Below are positions 3,316-41,117 of a stretch of 64,000 nucleotides of DNA, piece by piece; position 1 is the stretch's first letter, and each line of letters begins with the position of its first letter. The notes under the pieces were generated by a model. That model ran no database searches and was not told the DNA's origin. It saw only the letters and a list, made by a program, of their open reading frames with translations. Where the stretch lies: the sequence record NC_021529.2; one strand, given 5' to 3'. The position numbers and the translations under genes were made by a program.

Positions 3316-4440
3316 ATGTCTAAAACAATTTTTAATAAAAATAAGGTTGACCATCTTGGTCAACCTCTTTTCTTGGGCGAAGACCCGAATATTTCACGTT
3401 TCGAAACAGTAAAGCACGCTGTATTTGATCAGCTCACTGAAAAGCAGCTTTCATTCTTCTGGCGACCAGAAGAAGTCGATTTGACTCGTGACGCACAAGA
3501 CTTCGACCGTATGCCAGAACATTGGCAATACGTGTTCACACAGAATCTAAAATATCAATCACTATTAGACTCGGTTCAAGGGCGCGCTCCTAATATCGCG
3601 TTCTTGCCAATCTGTAGCGACAACGCATTCGAAAACTGGGTGACAACTTGGGACTTCAGTGAGACGATTCACAGTCGTTCATACACTCACATCATGCGTA
3701 ACTTGTACTCGAACCCGAGTGCTGTGTTTGATGAAATCGTTCTTGATAAGTCAATCATGGCGCGTGCTGAAGCGGTTACAGAGCATTATGACCGTCTAAT
3801 CGCAGAAACGCAGAAGCTACAGCAGCTTAAAGGCATGAATTGCGCACAGAGCATTCTACGCATTCAAGAAACTGCTGTCAAAGAAGCACTTTACTTGTGT
3901 ATGCACGCAGTAAACGCGCTTGAAGCAATTCGTTTCTATGTTTCATTTGCATGTACTTTCAACTTTGCTGAACAAGGCATCATGGAAGGCAACGCGAAAG
4001 TAATGAAACTGATTGCACGTGATGAGCAGCTTCACTTGAAAGGCACACAAGCGTTAATCAATATCTGGCACTCTGGTAAAGATGATCCAGAAATGGTAGA
4101 AATTGCTCGTCGTCTGAAACCAGAAGCTGAGAAGATTTTCATTGATGTAGCTGAGCAAGAAAAAGGGTGGGCACATTCATTATTTGCTAAAGGCACAGTT
4201 CCTGGCTTAAATGCAAATATGCTATGCGAATACGTTGAGTATCTTTCTGACAGTCGTATGCGTTCAGTGGGATTGGATAGCCCGTTTGTTCGTCGTAAGC
4301 ACCCTTTCCCATGGATTCGAAAGTGGCTAAATAGTGATTCAGTACAAGTTGCAGCACAAGAAGCTGAGCTAAGTTCATACCTAGTTGGTCAAATCAACTC
4401 GACGGTACGAGCTGAATTCCTAGAAACGTTAGAGGTGTAA
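3316..4440 (+). CDS. nrdB: Class Ia ribonucleotide reductase beta subunit
   Basis: FFWRPEEVDL, ETIHSRSY, EAIRFYVSFA, RDEQLH, QEAELSSY. Confidence 0.97.
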   Translation: MSKTIFNKNKVDHLGQPLFLGEDPNISRFETVKHAVFDQLTEKQLSFFWRPEEVDLTRDAQDFDRMPEHWQYVFTQNLKYQSLLDSVQGRAPNIAFLPICSDNAFENWVTTWDFSETIHSRSYTHIMRNLYSNPSAVFDEIVLDKSIMARAEAVTEHYDRLIAETQKLQQLKGMNCAQSILRIQETAVKEALYLCMHAVNALEAIRFYVSFACTFNFAEQGIMEGNAKVMKLIARDEQLHLKGTQALINIWHSGKDDPEMVEIARRLKPEAEKIFIDVAEQEKGWAHSLFAKGTVPGLNANMLCEYVEYLSDSRMRSVGLDSPFVRRKHPFPWIRKWLNSDSVQVAAQEAELSSYLVGQINSTVRAEFLETLEV

Positions 4441-4812: not shown

Positions 4813-5373
4813 ATGAAGAAGTTAATTGCGCTATTATTAGCTACGTGTGCGTTCAGCGCATCAGCGAGTCAATGTAAAGTAAATGGTCAAACGCTATCAG
4901 AGAAGCAATGGCACAACGTGCGTGCAGTGTTTGTGAACGGGTGGTATTATGATCTGAGCTGGTCGCTTGCTGCAATTGCAATAGTTGAGTCTAGTGCAGG
5001 CGAGAACATGATCAATCATCGAACGAAAGATTACGGCTTGATGCAGAATAACATAAAAACTGCAACAACACGTTTGAAGCGTTGGCGACAAGCAGGTAGA
5101 GATTTTGCACCGTACAACATTGACAATCCAGAAGATGTAAAGACGATATTGCTTACAGACAGAACAGTTTCTGTTCAGCTTGCAATTGAAGAACTCGAAT
5201 TCTGGAAAGGTGTTCGAGGCGACAACTGGCGTGAAATCTACTCAAGCTACAACGGTGGATATTACAAAGGTCAAAAATGGGAAAAGCGTGCTAGTAAGTA
5301 TGCAGACAAAATTGTTAATACGATGCGAGATCTAAAATCTTGCAGAAACGAACTAATGAGAGGGTTATATTAA
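4813..5373 (+). CDS. Secreted SLT/lysozyme-like protein (T4 Vs.1-like)
   Basis: Signal peptide, AIAIVESS catalytic Glu, YGLMQ, SYNGG. Confidence 0.75.
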   Translation: MKKLIALLLATCAFSASASQCKVNGQTLSEKQWHNVRAVFVNGWYYDLSWSLAAIAIVESSAGENMINHRTKDYGLMQNNIKTATTRLKRWRQAGRDFAPYNIDNPEDVKTILLTDRTVSVQLAIEELEFWKGVRGDNWREIYSSYNGGYYKGQKWEKRASKYADKIVNTMRDLKSCRNELMRGLY

Positions 5374-5558
5374 TGAGTAGTGTAATGATCTGGGCAGCCG
5401 CGTGGGCTATTCTGATGAACAATCAGTGGCTATTGAGAGTCTTTTGCTTATTCGGTTGGCACACATGGGAATATACGAAAGGTAGTAAGCGTGTATGTAA
5501 GCATTGTCAAAAGCGTCAAAGCCTAGTTCGCGTTGGCAAAGATAGCGATTGGCAATAA
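5373..5558 (+). CDS. Small hypothetical protein (DUF1660-like C.FGWH.W, CxxC)
   Basis: TAATG overlap with the upstream stop; CLFGWHTW and CKHC. Confidence 0.5.
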   Translation: MSSVMIWAAAWAILMNNQWLLRVFCLFGWHTWEYTKGSKRVCKHCQKRQSLVRVGKDSDWQ

Positions 5559-31536: not shown

Positions 31537-31746
31537 AGACAATACCGAAGTGTTTTTTCGTCTTTGACATGAATCGGAGTTGACTATCTTATTGGTTCTC
31601 AACAAGCAAATATCGTCTGTTTCAGCGACGCGCCTATCTGACTATTTCTAGACAGAGAGAATCTTTCCTTTCAAGCTGCACCGAAGCACTTCCCAGGTTA
31701 AGACAATCACCTTTTTAAGTAAGTAATTGGTTGCTGTATATTGTCT
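31537..31746 (-). ncRNA. Long ACAGCAA-family structured RNA 2
   Basis: AGACAATA/TATTGTCT closing stem, ATACAGCAACCAATT, GACGAAAAAACACTTC. Confidence 0.6.
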
Positions 31747-33110: not shown

Positions 33111-33223
33111 TGAGTGTCATTACTTGCGCCATCCGAGACTAGAGATACCAACTCTAAACGGGATTCGAACCCGAAACATTTCTTTTATCGGAAGAATTTG
33201 TAATTGTTTGCTGAAAACACTCA
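33111..33223 (-). ncRNA. ACAGCAA-family RNA enclosing an Ile-type anticodon arm and a T arm
   Basis: TGAGTGT/ACACTCA; CAGCAAACAATT; TTCTT-CCGATAA-AAGAA; CGGG-TTCGAAT-CCCG. Confidence 0.65.
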
Positions 33224-33231
33224 ATGGTATT

Positions 33232-34064: not shown

Positions 34065-34123
34065 AGTAATCGTTTTTTGCTTTTTTAAAATAAAAGTTTT
34101 GTATTGTTTGCTGCAAGATTACT
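34065..34123 (-). ncRNA. Minimal ACAGCAA-family RNA with a Lys-type anticodon stem-loop
   Basis: AGTAATC/GATTACT; CAGCAAACAAT; CTTTT-ATTTTAA-AAAAG; CAAAAAAC. Confidence 0.6.
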
Positions 34124-35992: not shown

Positions 35993-36901
35993 TCAATCGT
36001 ATAGACAAATTTTACCATGTTTTTCAAAATATTTTAAAATTTCTTCATATTCAACGTCAGAAAGTGTGCGAAATTCACGAAATCCGTCACCAGTAGAAGC
36101 GTCGTAAGGAAGTCTTGTGTATTTTTTATGCAAGTACGATTCATGCATACGAGCATCATTAACAGTTATAGACAATAAATTGTGTATATCAGTCCCACGT
36201 TTTCTCGCACATTCATACACTCTCTGTTTGACACGATAACTATTGCAAATTCCAATCTTACAATTTCCAGCATCATCAGTCCACATGTATAACCCATCGT
36301 GATTTCGATTTGAACATCCCGGACACCCAGAATAAAACTTCAGATTGGCTATTACAGGATTCCACGTCAATTCACACACATGACATGTATGCTCCCATGT
36401 CTTCCCAGAATTAGTGCCCCACGCATCGTTGTAAGGCGAAACAGTCAATGAAGGGTGTCTAGATTTTATAAATTCAACATATTCATCGTACGTATTCTTA
36501 CGACGGCACTCGGGACAGGAATATTTAGAAGTCCACGATACATTTCGCGAGTATTCACTACCACAGTCATGACAATGAAATTCAACTCTATTTCTGCCTC
36601 CTTTACCGTTACCAATATGAACGTATTCATGTTTGATAAGTTCGATTTGAGGATATTTTTCCTCGTGGGTTATGCGAAATTCTTCAAATTTCTCGTTGCG
36701 AACACATCGTTCACATGGCACAGTACCGTGCTTTGAAATTCGAGAATCTGACACTATATGAAAATCACCGCAAACAATACATTCTAGATAGTGATATGAA
36801 TCTAGAATTCTATGTTCCCCAAACCCATCAATAATATCACAACTTTGCTCAATTTCTGGTTTGAGTTCGGGATCTGAACATGAGCACTTATACGATATCA
36901 A
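35993..36901 (-). CDS. Zinc-ribbon repeat + GIY-YIG/T5orf172-type endonuclease
   Basis: Several CxxC pairs; LYMW..CKIGI..R..E..LH..Y..G..E.F. Confidence 0.7.
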   Translation of the reverse strand: MISYKCSCSDPELKPEIEQSCDIIDGFGEHRILDSYHYLECIVCGDFHIVSDSRISKHGTVPCERCVRNEKFEEFRITHEEKYPQIELIKHEYVHIGNGKGGRNRVEFHCHDCGSEYSRNVSWTSKYSCPECRRKNTYDEYVEFIKSRHPSLTVSPYNDAWGTNSGKTWEHTCHVCELTWNPVIANLKFYSGCPGCSNRNHDGLYMWTDDAGNCKIGICNSYRVKQRVYECARKRGTDIHNLLSITVNDARMHESYLHKKYTRLPYDASTGDGFREFRTLSDVEYEEILKYFEKHGKICLYD

Positions 36902-37181
36902 AGATTCTACAGCACGTCTAGCACCGTTTGTTTTCTTCAGTTCAATTTCACCAAAAGCAATTCACAGTCACTCTATCAATCTCAGGTGACATTTCTAATT
37001 TAGTCACACTTAGTCGTTCGAGTCCGGAAATGATAAATTCATAGCGCGCCAATTTAGATTTAGTTGGCGCGCTCATGCAGCCATTAGTTTTAGAGTGATT
37101 GTCAATTATAATCATAACATCTCATTCAATTATGAAGTTCTCAATATAATGTATCACAATTGACATATACTTGCAAATTAA

Positions 37182-37415
37182 TTAACCTAGATGCTTACGC
37201 TTATTCATTTCAACTAGAATTTCATCGTTGTAATGCTTGTTAAGCTGTACAAACTTCTTGTGTTGATCTTCTGTCAACTCATTCGTGTCATTTAGGTGCT
37301 TCAAGAACCCAAGAGGCTTACGAAACGACTTACGATACTCGTTCAGACGTTCATCTGTTAGATTATGCAACTGTTTCGGAGTAAGCAGTACTTTATTAAT
37401 ATCAAAATTACTCAT
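37182..37415 (-). CDS. Hypothetical protein
   Basis: GAGG SD. Confidence 0.6.
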   Translation of the reverse strand: MSNFDINKVLLTPKQLHNLTDERLNEYRKSFRKPLGFLKHLNDTNELTEDQHKKFVQLNKHYNDEILVEMNKRKHLG

Positions 37416-37440
37416 GTGTAACCTCTCTTTGTTTGTAAAA

Positions 37441-37556
37441 TGGTAGTCGGGGCTGGATTCGAACCAGCGACCACGTGCTTAACAGGCAATTGAAAGAGTG
37501 CTGGAGCGATACTTGACAGTATCATTCTTCGTGCTCTACCACTGAGCTACCCGACT
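37441..37556 (-). tRNA. tRNA-Asn(GTT) with a 41-nt insertion between nt 28 and 29
   Basis: Removing 37489-37529 gives a 75-nt cloverleaf with CGTGC/GCACG stem and CCA. Confidence 0.75.
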
Positions 37557-37561
37557 GTAAA

Positions 37562-37852
37562 TTATATGTTGAACTCACCACGTTCGAACGCTGCTAAGAA
37601 CTCAGCAGTTGAATCAAATGCAATGTATTCTTTACCAGTATGTTCTTTTGTTCGAACTCTAACTTTACCACCGCGAACTGCAACTTCGAATTGCCCGTGT
37701 TTAACATGAGCGTCTTTACGAACTGAACCTGACATCATTTTCTCAAGTTTCTTCGCAAAGTTTACGTCGTTGACGGTAGTAGGATTCTGTGGCATAAGTT
37801 TATCCCAACGAGAATCGCGCATTTCTGTAACAAACTCATCGAAAGTTTTCAT
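37562..37852 (-). CDS. Internal-protein-like late protein
   Basis: MKTFDEFVTE; CATAAATA at 37875-37882. Confidence 0.7.
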   Translation of the reverse strand: MKTFDEFVTEMRDSRWDKLMPQNPTTVNDVNFAKKLEKMMSGSVRKDAHVKHGQFEVAVRGGKVRVRTKEHTGKEYIAFDSTAEFLAAFERGEFNI

Positions 37853-37877
37853 TGTACTCTCCTTTTAAAGAAAGTAT

Positions 37878-38405
37878 TTATGTTCGAAGTTTGAACTTCA
37901 GATTTCGCCATTCAAATTTGGATACGTTTCGATTATGATAAAACGAATCCCAGTCAATTGAAATAGGACAATTCTTACTACCAACACGAGCTATGAATAC
38001 GTCGTGAGTCTTTCCGTATCGCTTTCTAAGCTCGTTTACGCGCTTATCGTAGTTAGCGATATAATCAGAGCAAGCTTTGTTATACGCAGCTTTAGAGAAG
38101 CGTTCAGTGCCTGCAAAACTACCGCTTAGATACGGACGGATTACTCGTACACGTTCAGTCGACCATCCCATATTGAAACTGTTCTCAATTTCACCCATGA
38201 TCTTGCCAGTCTTTTTACAACGAGCTAGAATAACCCAACAACGCTCACGTCGAAAATCTTTTCGAGTGTACACATTAACATGTTCTTCGACATAATTAGC
38301 GTGTTTGTTGTTGTAAATCGCTCGAAGACGCTTTCTCTCTTCAGGATCCATTGCAGCACGTTCTTCTTTAGAGAACGCTTGCGCAAATGTCATCGGCACA
38401 TTCAT
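37878..38405 (-). CDS. Hypothetical protein
   Basis: 175-aa ORF with ATGA coupling. Confidence 0.7.
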   Translation of the reverse strand: MNVPMTFAQAFSKEERAAMDPEERKRLRAIYNNKHANYVEEHVNVYTRKDFRRERCWVILARCKKTGKIMGEIENSFNMGWSTERVRVIRPYLSGSFAGTERFSKAAYNKACSDYIANYDKRVNELRKRYGKTHDVFIARVGSKNCPISIDWDSFYHNRNVSKFEWRNLKFKLRT

Positions 38406-38611
38406 ATCATACCTCGCTTACGCTTCAACTGACTTCGCTCAATCTGAGTAGTAATTTGCTTGTCTTTAGCTTTACTGCGACGAGAATTACCCCATCGAAA
38501 CCCAGCGCATAATCCGTGTTGATCACGCTTTAGCTTTTTTGCAAGCCAATGCGGGATATCTTCACCTTTACGCTGGTAATGCTTAGCAATATCAGTATAC
38601 GTTTTACCCAT
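38402..38611 (-). CDS. Small basic protein
   Basis: GGAGA SD. Confidence 0.6.
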   Translation of the reverse strand: MGKTYTDIAKHYQRKGEDIPHWLAKKLKRDQHGLCAGFRWGNSRRSKAKDKQITTQIERSQLKRKRGMI

Positions 38612-38622
38612 AATATTCTCCG

Positions 38623-38861
38623 TGGACGGGTGGGAGAATCGAACTCCCTACTGGCGCAACACATCGTCAACCCGATAAGAGTTTCGAAGTAAGAGCCTAT
38701 CAGCATATCAAATTCATTGTCTTTATTTCAACACACGACATTTCGACCTGTCAATGTGTCTTTTCTCGACACGTCCGAGTGATTCAGCACCATCACAGAT
38801 AGCGAATCTGCAACTGTACTAATGTTCGGCATACACTGCACACAGAGCACCAAGCCCCGCC
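38623..38861 (-). ncRNA. About 240-nt RNA with a 3' T arm and acceptor-like stem (tmRNA/T4 rnaC-D-like)
   Basis: 5' GGCGGGG, 3' GGGAG-TTCGATT-CTCCC-ACCCGTCCA. Confidence 0.45.
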
Positions 38862-38872
38862 ATAATAAATTG

Positions 38873-38950
38873 TGGTGACCCCAACAGGACTCGAACCTGT
38901 AACCTACCGATTATGAGTCGGTTGCTCTAACCGAGTTGAGCTATAGGACC
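38873..38950 (-). tRNA. tRNA CAT, probably Ile2 (lysidine type)
   Basis: Loop CTCATAA, ileX-like body, CCA. Confidence 0.85.
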
Positions 38951-38954
38951 ACGA

Positions 38955-39323
38955 TTATCTTTCAAGAAATCGACCAATCTTCGCTGCAAAAATGTTCTCT
39001 TCTTCTGCAATCAGAGCAACAGATTTTACTTGATGAAATACATCTTGATCATGTAAGTTATCTAGTTTACCTGCACATTTTGTCAGTTCTTTGATTGTAC
39101 GTCTAATCTCTATGCCGTCATGCTGACTTACTTCAGGATGCGTGTTGAGATTATCCATAACGGGAATTATTTTACCATAACATCCCATTCCGATAAAGTT
39201 TATCACAAGTCTATACTGCATTTCAACAGCAAATGAGCAATATTTTCTAAGATTGCGCTTTACAATTTCACAGCGATGTAAAATGCAATCTAACTCGCTG
39301 TTTATCTCATCAAACTTATTCAT
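38955..39323 (-). CDS. Hypothetical protein
   Basis: GAGG SD before MNKFDE. Confidence 0.6.
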   Translation of the reverse strand: MNKFDEINSELDCILHRCEIVKRNLRKYCSFAVEMQYRLVINFIGMGCYGKIIPVMDNLNTHPEVSQHDGIEIRRTIKELTKCAGKLDNLHDQDVFHQVKSVALIAEEENIFAAKIGRFLER

Positions 39324-39341
39324 AAACCCTCGTTTAAATCT

Positions 39342-39456
39342 GAGGTGAAGTGCAGGACTCGAACCTGCGACATCCGGCGTGCATGTGAATGCAGCATGAA
39401 ATCTTATCAGACTTCTTTTTTGGGCCGGCGCTCTAACCAACTGAGCTAACTTCACC
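39342..39456 (-). ncRNA. tRNA-like RNA with a 45-nt two-hairpin insert replacing the anticodon loop
   Basis: Canonical D and T arms, CCGGC/GCCGG stem, G-1:C73, ends TCA. Confidence 0.65.
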
Positions 39457-39469
39457 ATTGTAAAAACAC

Positions 39470-39599
39470 ATTGATGCGGGTGCAGGATTCGAACCTGCGT
39501 CACGATCTTATGAATGATATGCGAATTGATTGCCGTACAGATTCTTAACAGAATCAGTTTTTTGCTACGTGTGCTGCCACTACACCAACCCGCATCAAT
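39470..39599 (-). ncRNA. tRNA-like RNA (CAT, 8-nt loop) with a 49-nt insertion at 28/29
   Basis: 12-bp terminal stem, D and T arms, TACGGCAATCAATT motif. Confidence 0.65.
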
Positions 39600-39867
39600 A
39601 TGTTTTCGAGAGTGCTTGCATAGACCTAACGGTAATTCCCTACACAAGCACCAAAAAATCCTATTATATTTGCCTTAGCTAATCACAACACAACCTGGAG
39701 TCGTGCGCTTTAAGTACGGGTTGATTGACCCGTTCGCGTATGATTAGCGTAAAAGTATGATTACGCACCTTTTCTTCTTCAATGTCCAAGGCAAAAAGGA
39801 CGATGAATACTAGTGCGAGAAGATATACAATCAAATTGTTCACCTCGCTTAAACAGTGAGAGTACAT

Positions 39868-39990
39868 TGGTCGAGTGTAACAGAATCGAACTGTTCCCAC
39901 GATCTCCCTATGATATGCGTAAATTGGTTGCTGAATATAATCATGTCTGATTACAGTATGCTACGTGTGCTGCCACTACACCAACACTCG
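39868..39990 (-). tRNA. tRNA-Pro(AGG)-like with a 49-nt insertion at 28/29
   Basis: C1:G72, A73, CCA, loop ATAGGGA; 74-nt cloverleaf once the insert is removed. Confidence 0.7.
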
Positions 39991-40005
39991 ACCAATGTAC
40001 TCTCG

Positions 40006-40156
40006 ATATTTTAAATGTGCGCTACTTGCACGCCGACTGAGCGAATTTTAACTCAGCTAGTTTTTGTTCGTGAGCTAGTCCGCTAAGACTTCTCGCTGCT
40101 CGGCAGAACTTACCTGCCCCTATGTATTCATTGCGGCTAACGCACATTTAAAATAT
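40006..40156 (-). ncRNA. Multibranch structured RNA closed by a 16-bp stem
   Basis: ATATTTTAAATGTGCG/CGCACATTTAAAATAT with internal hairpins. Confidence 0.45.
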
Positions 40157-40160
40157 TACT

Positions 40161-40260
40161 CATCTTCAGCAAAGAGACAGAAACGATGAGTCTAGTCTGT
40201 TTATCAAAGTGTTCATCTTCAAGAAGAGGCGAAAACGATGAACTTAGTTCGCTTAATCAA
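40161..40260 (-). repeat. Two 47-nt tandem leader repeats with covarying stems
   Basis: 40161-40207 and 40214-40260. Confidence 0.6.
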
Positions 40261-40265
40261 CTGTG

Positions 40266-40400
40266 TTAATCTTAACATCTTTTCAGTGTAAGTCAACAAC
40301 TTTTTTCATTTATTTCATCGAGTTGAAAGTTTTTGTTTCTGTTTCTGTCTCTCGACTCGATGAAATACATTCTACAGACTTATTTTCGAAAGTCAACAAC
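40266..40400 (-). promoter_or_regulatory. Two strong tandem early promoters at the head of the RNA cluster
   Basis: GTTGTTGACT-17-TAAGAT and GTTGTTGACT-17-TAGAAT, with A-rich UP elements. Confidence 0.75.
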
Positions 40401-40414
40401 TTTTTCAAATTAAT

Positions 40415-40669
40415 TTAAACAGAAAGAATAATACCGCTTTCTGTCTCACCGCGCTCAAGCGCAGCATGTTTGATCTGTAGTTGTGATACCGCTTGTTGAA
40501 GCTCAAGAATAGCTTTGTCATAAAGCTTGTTGTTCTCTTTAAGCAAAGTAATCTGATCAGTCTGTAAGCCGACAATATACGTCAATAGAACGACGCTCTC
40601 ATCTGAATTAAGTGATTCAGGGTCTTCTTGATACTTCTTCAATACTGCTTCGGTAGATAGATCAGTCAT
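40415..40669 (-). CDS. Coiled-coil hypothetical protein
   Basis: Overlaps the 57B stop. Confidence 0.65.
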   Translation of the reverse strand: MTDLSTEAVLKKYQEDPESLNSDESVVLLTYIVGLQTDQITLLKENNKLYDKAILELQQAVSQLQIKHAALERGETESGIILSV

Positions 40670-41117
40670 TGTTAGCAACCCAATTTAAGTCTAGTGGTTC
40701 GATGTATTCATCAACAAGCCGAACTTCAGCGTTAACAAACATCGGTGTGATAACGTCATCATAAGATAACGTAACGTGAGGTTGATAGTCAGGGTAATCG
40801 TGTGTACCACCGATAGAGATAAGGTCTTCGTGACGCTCGACAAGTTCAGGACATGTCATTTTAGCAACAACTGCGTGCTTACCGTCTTGCGTTTTCCAGC
40901 AGTCAATTTGTTCGACAGTGGCAACGAAAGTTGTATCTACGGTAGGAACATCAATTTGTTTGCGACTAAAAAGCACAGTCACATGAAAATCATCTGGATC
41001 TAGCGGATTTTGCAGACGAAGCGTTTTCTGCAATTGAATAAGTTCTTGCTTACTCGCTTCGTCTACTTTGATACCAACGTAAGTTCCCTGACTTTCAAGG
41101 AACTTAGATAGTTTCAT
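40662..41117 (-). CDS. gp57B: 2H phosphoesterase, T4 gp57B/Acb1 homologue
   Basis: HVT x2; LRLQNP..HVT..FSR aligns to T4 57B; syntenic with 57A and gene 1. Confidence 0.85.
   Translation of the reverse strand: MKLSKFLESQGTYVGIKVDEASKQELIQLQKTLRLQNPLDPDDFHVTVLFSRKQIDVPTVDTTFVATVEQIDCWKTQDGKHAVVAKMTCPELVERHEDLISIGGTHDYPDYQPHVTLSYDDVITPMFVNAEVRLVDEYIEPLDLNWVANND

Follow-up and report, generated by a model that had tools for sequence, protein, structure and literature searches.

At the upstream end of the transfer RNA (tRNA) cluster of Vibrio phage nt-1, a KVP40-like T4-type myovirus, a tRNA sequence appears to be interrupted by an insertion and shut inside a long inverted repeat, which raises the question of whether this locus, here called element A, encodes a tRNA that matures by an unusual route, an RNA that resembles a tRNA without acting as one, or no RNA at all. 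The stretch analysed, referred to below as the window and numbered from its first base, comprises 64,000 nucleotides (nt), matching bases 62001-126000 of NC_021529.2 at 100% identity. An initial annotation of the locus had described a proline tRNA, gated or serving as a decoy and in need of special processing; its observation was confirmed and its interpretation was in part supported. We found that element A is a real, strongly conserved tRNA-shaped RNA gene, and that the insert-bearing family to which it belongs, in the tRNA arrays of giant phages, is undescribed.

A tRNA-shaped RNA gene closed by a 21-bp duplex

Element A is read from the minus strand, as are all 28 tRNAs called by ARAGORN in the window (27.8-39.0 kilobases (kb)), and it lies downstream of genes 1, 57A and 57B; the tRNA region of T4 is likewise found downstream of 57A-57B and is syntenic with the nt-1 cluster. 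Its parts are as follows.

39858-40004, minus strand: element A as a whole, 147 nt, a tRNA-like core closed by a 21-base-pair (bp) outer duplex
39984-40004, minus strand: 5' arm of the outer duplex, the final 7 nt of which (39990-39984, CGAGUGU) are acceptor positions 1-7
39966-39983, minus strand: U8, G9, the D arm (GUGU / AGUGGCA / GCAC, with a U13.G22 wobble) and A26, in the register obtained by comparing 38 family members
39915-39963, minus strand: the insert module, 49 nt, between G28 (39964) and A29 (39914)
39900-39914, minus strand: distal anticodon arm, A29-C31 paired with G39-U41, loop AUAGGGA, anticodon AGG at 39909-39907
39879-39899, minus strand: variable loop UGGG (4 nt) and T arm (AACAG / UUCGAUU / CUGUU), placed by T-stem covariation and the invariant UUCGA
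39858-39878, minus strand: 3' arm of the outer duplex, with acceptor positions 66-72 (39878-39872), A73 (39871), CCA (39870-39868) and 10 further paired nt

On the minus strand, 40004-39984 and 39878-39858 pair at 21 of 21 positions, forming the perfect inverted repeat that had been proposed to bury the CCA end; A73-CCA does lie within the duplex, and the 5' end is buried with it. By an arithmetic estimate, a perfect 21-bp repeat within 400 nt is expected by chance about 6e-6 times per 64 kb, and only three long-range inverted repeats of at least 15 nt exist in the window, those of element A, of its paralogue B and of a neighbouring RNA, E, all of them at 39.46-40.16 kb. The minimum free energy of element A is -56.4 kcal/mol (z = -6.65), and none of 200 shuffled sequences was as stable.

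Deletion of 39963-39915 (49 nt) leaves 74 nt that ARAGORN calls tRNA-Pro(agg), with C1:G72, A73, an encoded CCA, a 5-bp anticodon stem (CGAUC/GAUCG) and the loop AUAGGGA, so that the excision at 28/29 claimed earlier proved exact to the base. The unedited element receives no ARAGORN call and no match to the Rfam tRNA model (RF00005), even at E <= 10. As encoded, its anticodon stem is split by the insert into 2 + 3 bp, with C42 and G43, 3' of the distal arm, pairing with C27 and G28 (39965-39964), and A73-CCA is paired within the outer duplex. Element A cannot be an ordinary tRNA in this form, which makes special processing or a decoy role a reasonable proposal. A register with the insert at 26/27 (a CAU-bulged anticodon stem and a D stem GUGU/ACAC) was dropped: the distant family members L153, L130 and paralogue D show A26-C27-G28 before the insert and have a canonical 7-nt D loop, supporting the 28/29 register for element A. 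The locus carries no annotation in the nt-1 record, and in relatives it is labelled trnX or tRNA-OTHER (phi-pp2, phi-Grn1, phi-ST2 and 1.081.O) or overlaid by a 'hypothetical protein' coding sequence (QD01 and F86).

A 163-nt query for element A is 98-100% identical to about 30 KVP40-like phages, 80-85% to K566, D482 and F86, and 73% to 1.081.O, and the locus is syntenic in every phage examined. When the orthologues of nt-1, KVP40, F86, K566, D482 and 1.081.O were aligned, the 41 proposed pairs were formed in every cell of the alignment (245/245), and 18 of the 41 had changed on both sides. The outer duplex, 20-21 bp long in all six, is paired in 100% of cells, and compensatory double changes at nine of its 21 pairs indicate that it is under selection. 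Sliding the structure by 1-3 columns lowered pairing to 24-43%, and none of 500 shuffles matched the observed values. Several G.U pairs among the orthologues are valid solely in the minus-strand transcript, and the D stem is invariant except for U13.G22, which becomes U-A in 1.081.O. Across three lineages, 13 sequences of A/B type have the same structure (98.5% of cells paired, double changes at 20 of 26 pairs), in which four of five T-stem pairs show compensatory changes and the T-loop core UUCGA is invariant. Pairs 29-31/39-41 read AUC/GAU in one clade and GAA/UUC in the other, and double changes affect all seven acceptor-stem pairs in the covariation alignments.

Between nt-1 and KVP40, element A is the most conserved segment of its region (98.0% identity, against 92.8% for paralogue C, 92.4% for paralogue B, 90.1% for RNA E and 85.3% for the A-B spacer). 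The few substitutions within it in five further phages amount to one T-stem pair changed on both sides, a G.U and two single mismatches, whereas the four bases just beyond the duplex vary freely, conservation ending sharply at the duplex ends. Since substitutions inside mostly keep the structure and the sequence outside diverges freely, the selected unit is the whole 147 nt, stem included. Of the tertiary signatures of tRNA, U8 and A14 do not vary, GG and the T loop are there, and the 15-48 Levitt pair over 37 distinct family genes is A-U in 16, G-C in 13, G.U in three and A.C in one. From the invariance of U8 and A14 and the covariation of 15-48, we conclude that the family keeps the tRNA L-shape. 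Position 15-48 is G.G in element A of nt-1, KVP40, F86 and K566, and in no other family member.

The insert module and its relatives in phage tRNA arrays

The insert of element A consists of UAGCAUACUG, the hairpin UAAUCA-GACA-UGAUUA of the initial annotation (hp1, 39953-39938, loop GACA) and UAUUCAGCAACCAAUUUACGCAU, its elements following in the order UAGCA, linker, hp1, UAUUCAGCAACCAA, linker and GCAU. UAUUCAGCAACCAA is unchanged across the six orthologues. Among the 13 A/B-type sequences, hp1 shows compensatory changes at all six of its pairs, and the motifs UAGC and C(A/G)GCA are invariant. The module consensus can be written as UAGC(A), an A-rich linker, a 6-bp hairpin (usually with a GNNA loop), 3-5 nt, C(A/G)GCA(A), an A/U-rich linker and (G)C(N)AU. 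It sits between the invariant C27-G28 and positions 29-31, at the same site in 38 aligned genes, and measures 41-55 nt across the family. RNAalifold adds a 2-bp GC/GC helix between UAGCA and CAGCA, whose invariant bases speak neither for nor against it. A switch pairing of the insert's ACCAAU with AUUGGU of the 5' arm was rejected, being complementary in nt-1 A and B and not in 1.081.O, K566_B or KVP40_B. The search for an antisense target of the insert within the window gave three sites at no more than two mismatches against 0.8 expected, none convincing, which include element A itself and one same-strand paralogous motif. A CAGCAA(C/A)CAA-like motif recurs on the same strand in the tRNA cluster (11 matches at no more than one mismatch, 4.3 expected); copies occur in the cluster's spacers at 31727-31740 and 34104-34113, both on the minus strand.

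The initial annotation had referred to the same 28/29 insertion elsewhere, and two further genes of the window, paralogues D and B, do become tRNAs when their inserts are deleted. The paralogues in nt-1, with their scores under the family covariance model, R1, are listed here.

39463-39606, minus strand: paralogue B, with the D arm and module of element A, a 16-bp outer duplex and the 8-nt anticodon loop AUUCAUAA; R1 121 bits
37445-37556, minus strand: paralogue D, of tRNA-Asn(GUU) body, its acceptor stem plain and its CCA encoded, equivalent to KVP40 tRNA-Pseudo-3; R1 60 bits
39345-39455, minus strand: paralogue C, a tRNA body whose anticodon loop contains a related module, equivalent to KVP40 tRNA-Pseudo-5; R1 45 bits

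Removal of its 41-nt insert at 28/29 turns D into a perfect tRNA-Asn(GUU), and the same operation on B (39475-39594) gives a tRNA with an 8-nt anticodon loop. The B orthologues have this 8-nt loop in nt-1, KVP40 and F86, or else UCU, and their relatives in uncultivated phages have AUCAUAA (CAU); the geometry of the 8-nt loop resembles that of frameshift suppressors. Paralogue C scores 55.9 bits against RF00005, with a 44-nt insert, and KVP40 has a fifth member, tRNA-Pseudo-4 (P4).

The wider family was collected by pattern scans and then filtered with R1, tighter patterns being used since the loose pattern GCATATC...AGATCGT gave mostly chance matches. Element A, which is in the model seed, scores 125 bits. 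Beyond the vibriophages, the module at 28/29 was found in more than 30 genes within tRNA arrays of unrelated uncultivated large phages, on contigs of 81-302 kb from IMG/VR and JGI metagenomes (L130, L133, L136, L153, L184, L187, L190, L206, L209, L217 and others); one GTDB contig (L176), binned with a Bacteroidales metagenome-assembled genome, carries it too. Independent members on nine of the contigs named (all but L130) and on L176 score 52-108 bits. The copies outside the vibriophages always lie within tRNA arrays, often two to four in tandem. Across 185,579 species genomes the other 15 pattern matches received no R1 score, and this narrow pattern revealed no clearly chromosomal copy. The family thus spans at least three phage lineages, the marine KVP40-like vibriophages and two groups of uncultivated large phages.

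Loop slips occur within the family, with UUUGGGU, UUUUGGGU and UUUUGGU found among near-identical genes and C33 or A33 in the CAU type. On L176, the gene at 3595-3717 (minus strand) is a chimera with a 5' half of CAU type and a 3' half of UGG type, its acceptor strands unpaired, and is apparently the product of recombination between tandem copies, with the crossover in the module that they share. At 33155-33231 of the window (minus strand), directly after tRNA-Gln, a module-like UUUUCAGCAAACAAUUAC is followed by a T arm (UCGGG-UUCGAAU-CCCGU); with 29.5 bits under R1, tRNA included, it looks like a truncated or degenerate family member. The T arm and acceptor-like 3' strand (GGGAG-UUCGAUU-CUCCC, then CCCGUCC-A) at 38620-38860 (minus strand), about 240 nt downstream of a possible partner GGCGGG, could belong to a large tRNA-ended RNA; ARAGORN makes no transfer-messenger RNA (tmRNA) call there, and R1 gives just 17 bits. 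HNH-type endonuclease genes lie inside the tRNA arrays of nt-1 (35993-36901, minus strand) and of L130 (1947-2516), and might be tied to the spread or protection of interrupted tRNA genes. The giant-phage array on L130 also contains a tmRNA-like gene called by ARAGORN (5114-5539, tag GNENYAYAVAA*) and, at 1330-1700, a unit of about 190 nt repeated downstream of three tandem insert-bearing genes.

Candidate roles of element A

The anticodon loop is the least conserved part of element A on an otherwise near-identical body, reading AUAGGGA (AGG) in nt-1 and the KVP40-type phages, AUUAGGA (UAG) in F86, K566 and D482, and CUUCAAA (UCA) in 1.081.O. Among the proline identity elements invoked by the initial annotation (a set of E. 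coli type), G35/G36 of an NGG anticodon are confined to nt-1 and the KVP40-type phages and have been lost in F86, K566, D482 and 1.081.O, whereas C1:G72 and A73-CCA are kept in five of the six orthologues (nt-1, KVP40, F86, K566 and D482). In 1.081.O these read G1:C72 and U73-CAA, and the CCA is replaced by CAA/UCA with its 5'-arm partners changed in step, so that there it covaries as ordinary duplex and not as a retained 3' end. The unconserved anticodon, together with this covariation, refutes a conserved proline-decoding role, and the assignment as tRNA-Pro(AGG), against which the broken Levitt pair also speaks, was not supported. In the KVP40-like lineage element A probably no longer decodes proline, a function for which nt-1 has two other, canonical tRNA-Pro(UGG) genes (ARAGORN). 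The C1:G72 pair and a D arm like those of the canonical phage tRNA-Pro and tRNA-Gln make a Pro/Gln ancestry probable, though not a present function of that kind. A branch of 49 nt at 28/29 would hardly be tolerated in the ribosomal A and P sites, where tRNA is contacted along its anticodon stem.

In the surroundings of the element, the duplexes of E, A and B lie head to tail downstream of two promoter-like sites.

40006-40156, minus strand: RNA E, a structured RNA of about 150 nt with its own duplex of about 17 bp, one nt from element A
40269-40396, minus strand: two tandem sigma-70-like promoters (40396-40369 and 40296-40269) reading towards E, A, B and C

The outer duplex and two inner hairpins of RNA E covary across six phages, and it has no Rfam match. 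The promoter-like sites, which are consensus matches only, read TTGACT-16-TAGAAT and TTGACT-16-TAAGAT with an extended TG, and no minus-strand terminator was predicted in 38800-40700.

The explanation that we favour, giving it about an even chance, is that element A is a non-decoding tRNA mimic of KVP40-like vibriophages, released and locked by an RNase III-type stem. Element A would be co-transcribed with E, B, C and small open reading frames from early promoters some 270-390 nt upstream, and the two-turn perfect duplexes around E, A and B would serve as stems for processing by a double-strand-specific, RNase III-type enzyme and for stability. We consider an RNase III-type role the likeliest for the stem because the tandem duplexes of E, A and B (about 1.5-2 turns) resemble those of ribosomal RNA (rRNA) and T7 early-RNA processing. 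Cleavage at the stems would free each RNA with its ends still paired, the stem also protecting and sequestering them, and an end-paired element A would escape RNase P, CCA addition and aminoacylation and so stay out of translation, acting through its tRNA shape and the insert module. Its likeliest role would be to act as bait or sponge, drawing off a factor that holds tRNA by its body and anticodon arm, candidates being host tRNA-cleaving defence nucleases or a tRNA-processing or tRNA-modifying enzyme; the shifting anticodon loop would mean either that the target changes or that constraint has relaxed. Phage tRNA arrays are now mostly seen as a counter to host tRNA-cleaving defences in addition to a codon supply. 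A non-decoding role is supported by the varied anticodon, the 8-nt loop or UCU of B, the broken Levitt pair and the CCA acting as duplex in 1.081.O. If the family members are mimics, they would be a new class of phage non-coding RNA, which could explain blunted tRNA-directed immunity or tuned tRNA enzymes.

Several observations weigh against this explanation. The transcription, ends, stability and RNase III cleavage of element A are all inferred from sequence, and no protein partner or target candidate for it was identified. A73-CCA occupies the exact position of a mature tRNA 3' end in five of six orthologues. Nearly every anticodon loop in the family has U33 and a purine at position 37, and sub-families of the uncultivated clade keep their loop despite diverged stems (AUUCCAA, for example, in at least five genes). 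In the uncultivated-phage array stretches examined, Gly(UCC) exists only as an insert-bearing gene (L130 936-1324 and 6439-6564, L133 and L136), and Gly(GCC) and Gly(CCC) are canonical. To judge from the loop rule, the conserved sub-family loops and the Gly(UCC) pattern, some members at the least may be genuine tRNA genes that lose or tolerate their insert, and element A is possibly one of them.

The same three observations keep alive, as a minority view to which we would give somewhat better than one chance in five, a rival in which element A is a gated, intervened tRNA gene: the 49-nt module would be excised at 28/29, the nick in the anticodon stem sealed by an RNA ligase, and the outer stem trimmed by RNase III, RNase P and 3' exonucleases to A73-CCA, giving a working tRNA-Pro(AGG). 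Exact deletion restores canonical tRNAs for A, D and, with its 8-nt loop, B; C27-G28/C42-G43 and 29-31/39-41 are complementary across the insert in all cases; the boundary motifs are kept (start (U/A)A(G/A)(C/A)A, end ...AU); and the CCA of element A is encoded at the correct place. A nick at 28/29 would also fit KVP40 RNA ligase 2, described as a characterised, nick-sealing enzyme (Yin, Ho, Miller & Shuman 2004, as cited in PMC2577357). This rival is nevertheless incompatible, as far as conserved decoding goes, with AGG, UAG and UCA on one body, and it has to accommodate the 8-nt loop of B and the two tRNA-Pro(UGG) genes already present in nt-1. No endonuclease, ribozyme core or bulge-helix-bulge was recognised and no Rfam match appeared at E <= 10, the 49 nt are far below group I intron size, and a fully paired 14-bp leader-trailer extension is generally a poor RNase P substrate. 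In a broader and rather doubtful form, the 41-55-nt module would be a previously unknown class of tRNA intervening sequence of large phages, removed by a phage or host endonuclease or by an unrecognised small ribozyme. The genes would then encode tRNAs that are 'gated', or that stay out of reach of anticodon nucleases until they mature, with A and B as derivatives further locked by the outer stem. Module removal would nick duplex RNA, which is just what phage RNA ligase 2 prefers to act on; to our knowledge the natural substrate of that ligase has never been identified. Removal of the insert would amount to the first protein-dependent or novel ribozyme-dependent tRNA splicing in the bacterial virosphere and would supply a natural substrate for Rnl2-type ligases.

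It is unlikely, though worth weighing, that the tRNA body is a scaffold only and that the functional part is the module, which would bind a protein as an aptamer does or seed base pairing. No other feature is conserved so widely from one tRNA body or phage lineage to the next, and the invariance of UAUUCAGCAACCAA and the recurrence of the CAGCAA(C/A)CAA-like motif in the tRNA cluster agree with such a role; yet the vibriophage and uncultivated clades have only C(A/G)GCA and UAGC in common, too short for a common antisense target, the window offers no convincing complementary site, and the conservation of the anticodon arm and tertiary pairs is left unexplained. We regard as improbable the suggestion that element A is a decaying pseudo-tRNA whose sole role is its stem, an RNase III site punctuating and stabilising an early polycistronic transcript. 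Relatives' annotations as pseudo or 'OTHER' for family genes or the locus, the drifting anticodon and the broken Levitt pair point that way, but the interior is conserved equally with the stem, hp1 and the T stem covary around an invariant D arm, identity is 98% against 85% in the adjoining spacer, and a processing hairpin needs no 105 structured nt kept over lineages 20-27% apart. That element A is no RNA gene, and instead a small protein gene or a DNA-level inverted repeat (a miniature inverted-repeat transposable element or a cruciform), is very improbable indeed. In the genomes of nt-1, KVP40, F86 and K566 the antisense strand has an open frame of about 52 codons, and coding sequences are annotated over the locus in QD01 and F86; the frame is, however, broken by a 1-nt indel in D482 and absent in 1.081.O, so that the protein-coding reading was rejected, and a DNA element is at odds with arms that change yet stay complementary, with G.U pairs that the opposite strand would turn into A.C and with a syntenic locus in all phages examined.

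Further features surround the locus. Two paralogous hairpins of about 33 nt (..UCAUCGUUU...GAAGAUGA..) lie at 40175-40250 (minus strand), just downstream of the second promoter-like site, and a hairpin with 22-nt arms lies between the two sites (40308-40370). Directly past the 3' arm of element A, at about 39679-39835 (minus strand), is a small open reading frame with a Shine-Dalgarno-like GAGGUG and a hydrophobic N-terminus; short coding sequences are annotated at the matching place in K566, D482 and F86. The gene at 40662-41117 (minus strand), annotated as gp57B 'RNA ligase', is the Acb1 anti-CBASS phosphodiesterase (PF23474, E 7e-47); it was thereby ruled out as a splicing enzyme, and its adjacency to element A says nothing on splicing.

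Comparison with known systems

The annotations of KVP40-type phages (KVP40 NC_005083, phi-pp2 JN849462, phi-Grn1, phi-ST2 and 1.081.O) concern the same family and partly the same locus. The trnX of phi-pp2 (L002, 4130-4249) is the core of element A, and KVP40 tRNA-Pseudo-3, -4 and -5 correspond to D, P4 and C; these are automatic tRNAscan-type calls with arbitrary 'introns' and anticodons given as Val, Phe, Asn or OTHER. The literature searched, which did not extend to the 2003 KVP40 genome paper, gave nothing on the 28/29 module, the outer duplex or the relatives in other phages. The family is thus a recurrent, structurally supported tRNA variant of phage tRNA arrays that pipelines miss or label as pseudo.

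Intron-containing tRNA genes, whether of bacterial group I or of the endonuclease-dependent archaeal and eukaryal kind (some at non-canonical positions), are alike in that exact removal restores a canonical cloverleaf. They differ in that the insert of element A interrupts the anticodon stem on its 5' side, at 28/29, rather than the loop. A group I intron has a catalytic core (P3-P9) of about 200 nt or more and in tRNA genes sits in the anticodon loop. The 41-55-nt inserts of the family are too small for one and have no Rfam intron or ribozyme match at E <= 10, and for element A a group I intron was rejected on size, stem position and the lack of an Rfam intron match. A bulge-helix-bulge motif (two 3-nt bulges and a 4-bp helix) was not evident on inspection of the consensus alignments, no genome-wide endonuclease search having been made, and we know of no splicing endonuclease in phages or bacteria; removal of the insert from element A is a candidate process only.

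Phage T4 makes two small stable RNAs, C and D (species 1 and 2), whose function is unknown and whose genes lie in a T4-type tRNA cluster (PMC3014915). T4 rnaC has a T-arm and acceptor-like end, but both RNAs are without a D arm, module or long outer duplex, and their folds are unlike that of element A; homology was rejected, R1 giving 14.7 bits (E 0.25) on rnaC and listing no match for rnaD. Bacterial Y RNAs with a tRNA-like domain (YrlA, Rfam RF02553) were reportedly described by Chen and colleagues in 2014. Like element A, they combine a long stem of the 5' and 3' ends with a module of tRNA D and T arms. They occur in phages too and are non-decoding tRNA mimics. YrlA is, however, circularly permuted, with a stem in place of the anticodon arm and the T arm before the D arm, whereas element A keeps the normal order and its stem extends the acceptor. 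Membership was rejected, since RF02553 reached 23.5 bits against a gathering score of 69, in an artefact that runs from B (its T arm) into C (its D arm), and gave no match on element A; among the open reading frames scanned at 35993-39323 and 40415-41117, no TROVE-like (Ro60/Rsr) gene was found.

The outer duplex compares with the RNase III stems that flank 16S and 23S rRNA and with the similar processing of phage T7 early RNAs. In each case a helix of at least two turns is formed from flanking sequence in a polycistronic transcript, here with the tandem units E, A and B; the duplex of element A has 21 uninterrupted bp, or 26 bp when stacked on the T stem, about two helical turns. It differs in being continuous with the acceptor stem and strongly sequence-conserved among close relatives, and its cleavage is a prediction. 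Engineered 'tRNA scaffold' RNAs, reportedly described by Ponchon and Dardel in 2007, stabilise recombinant RNAs and offer a parallel for the core: there too a foreign module sits in the anticodon arm, and the tRNA body lends it folding and stability. Element A, by comparison, is natural, retains the anticodon hairpin beside its insert and has its ends additionally locked.

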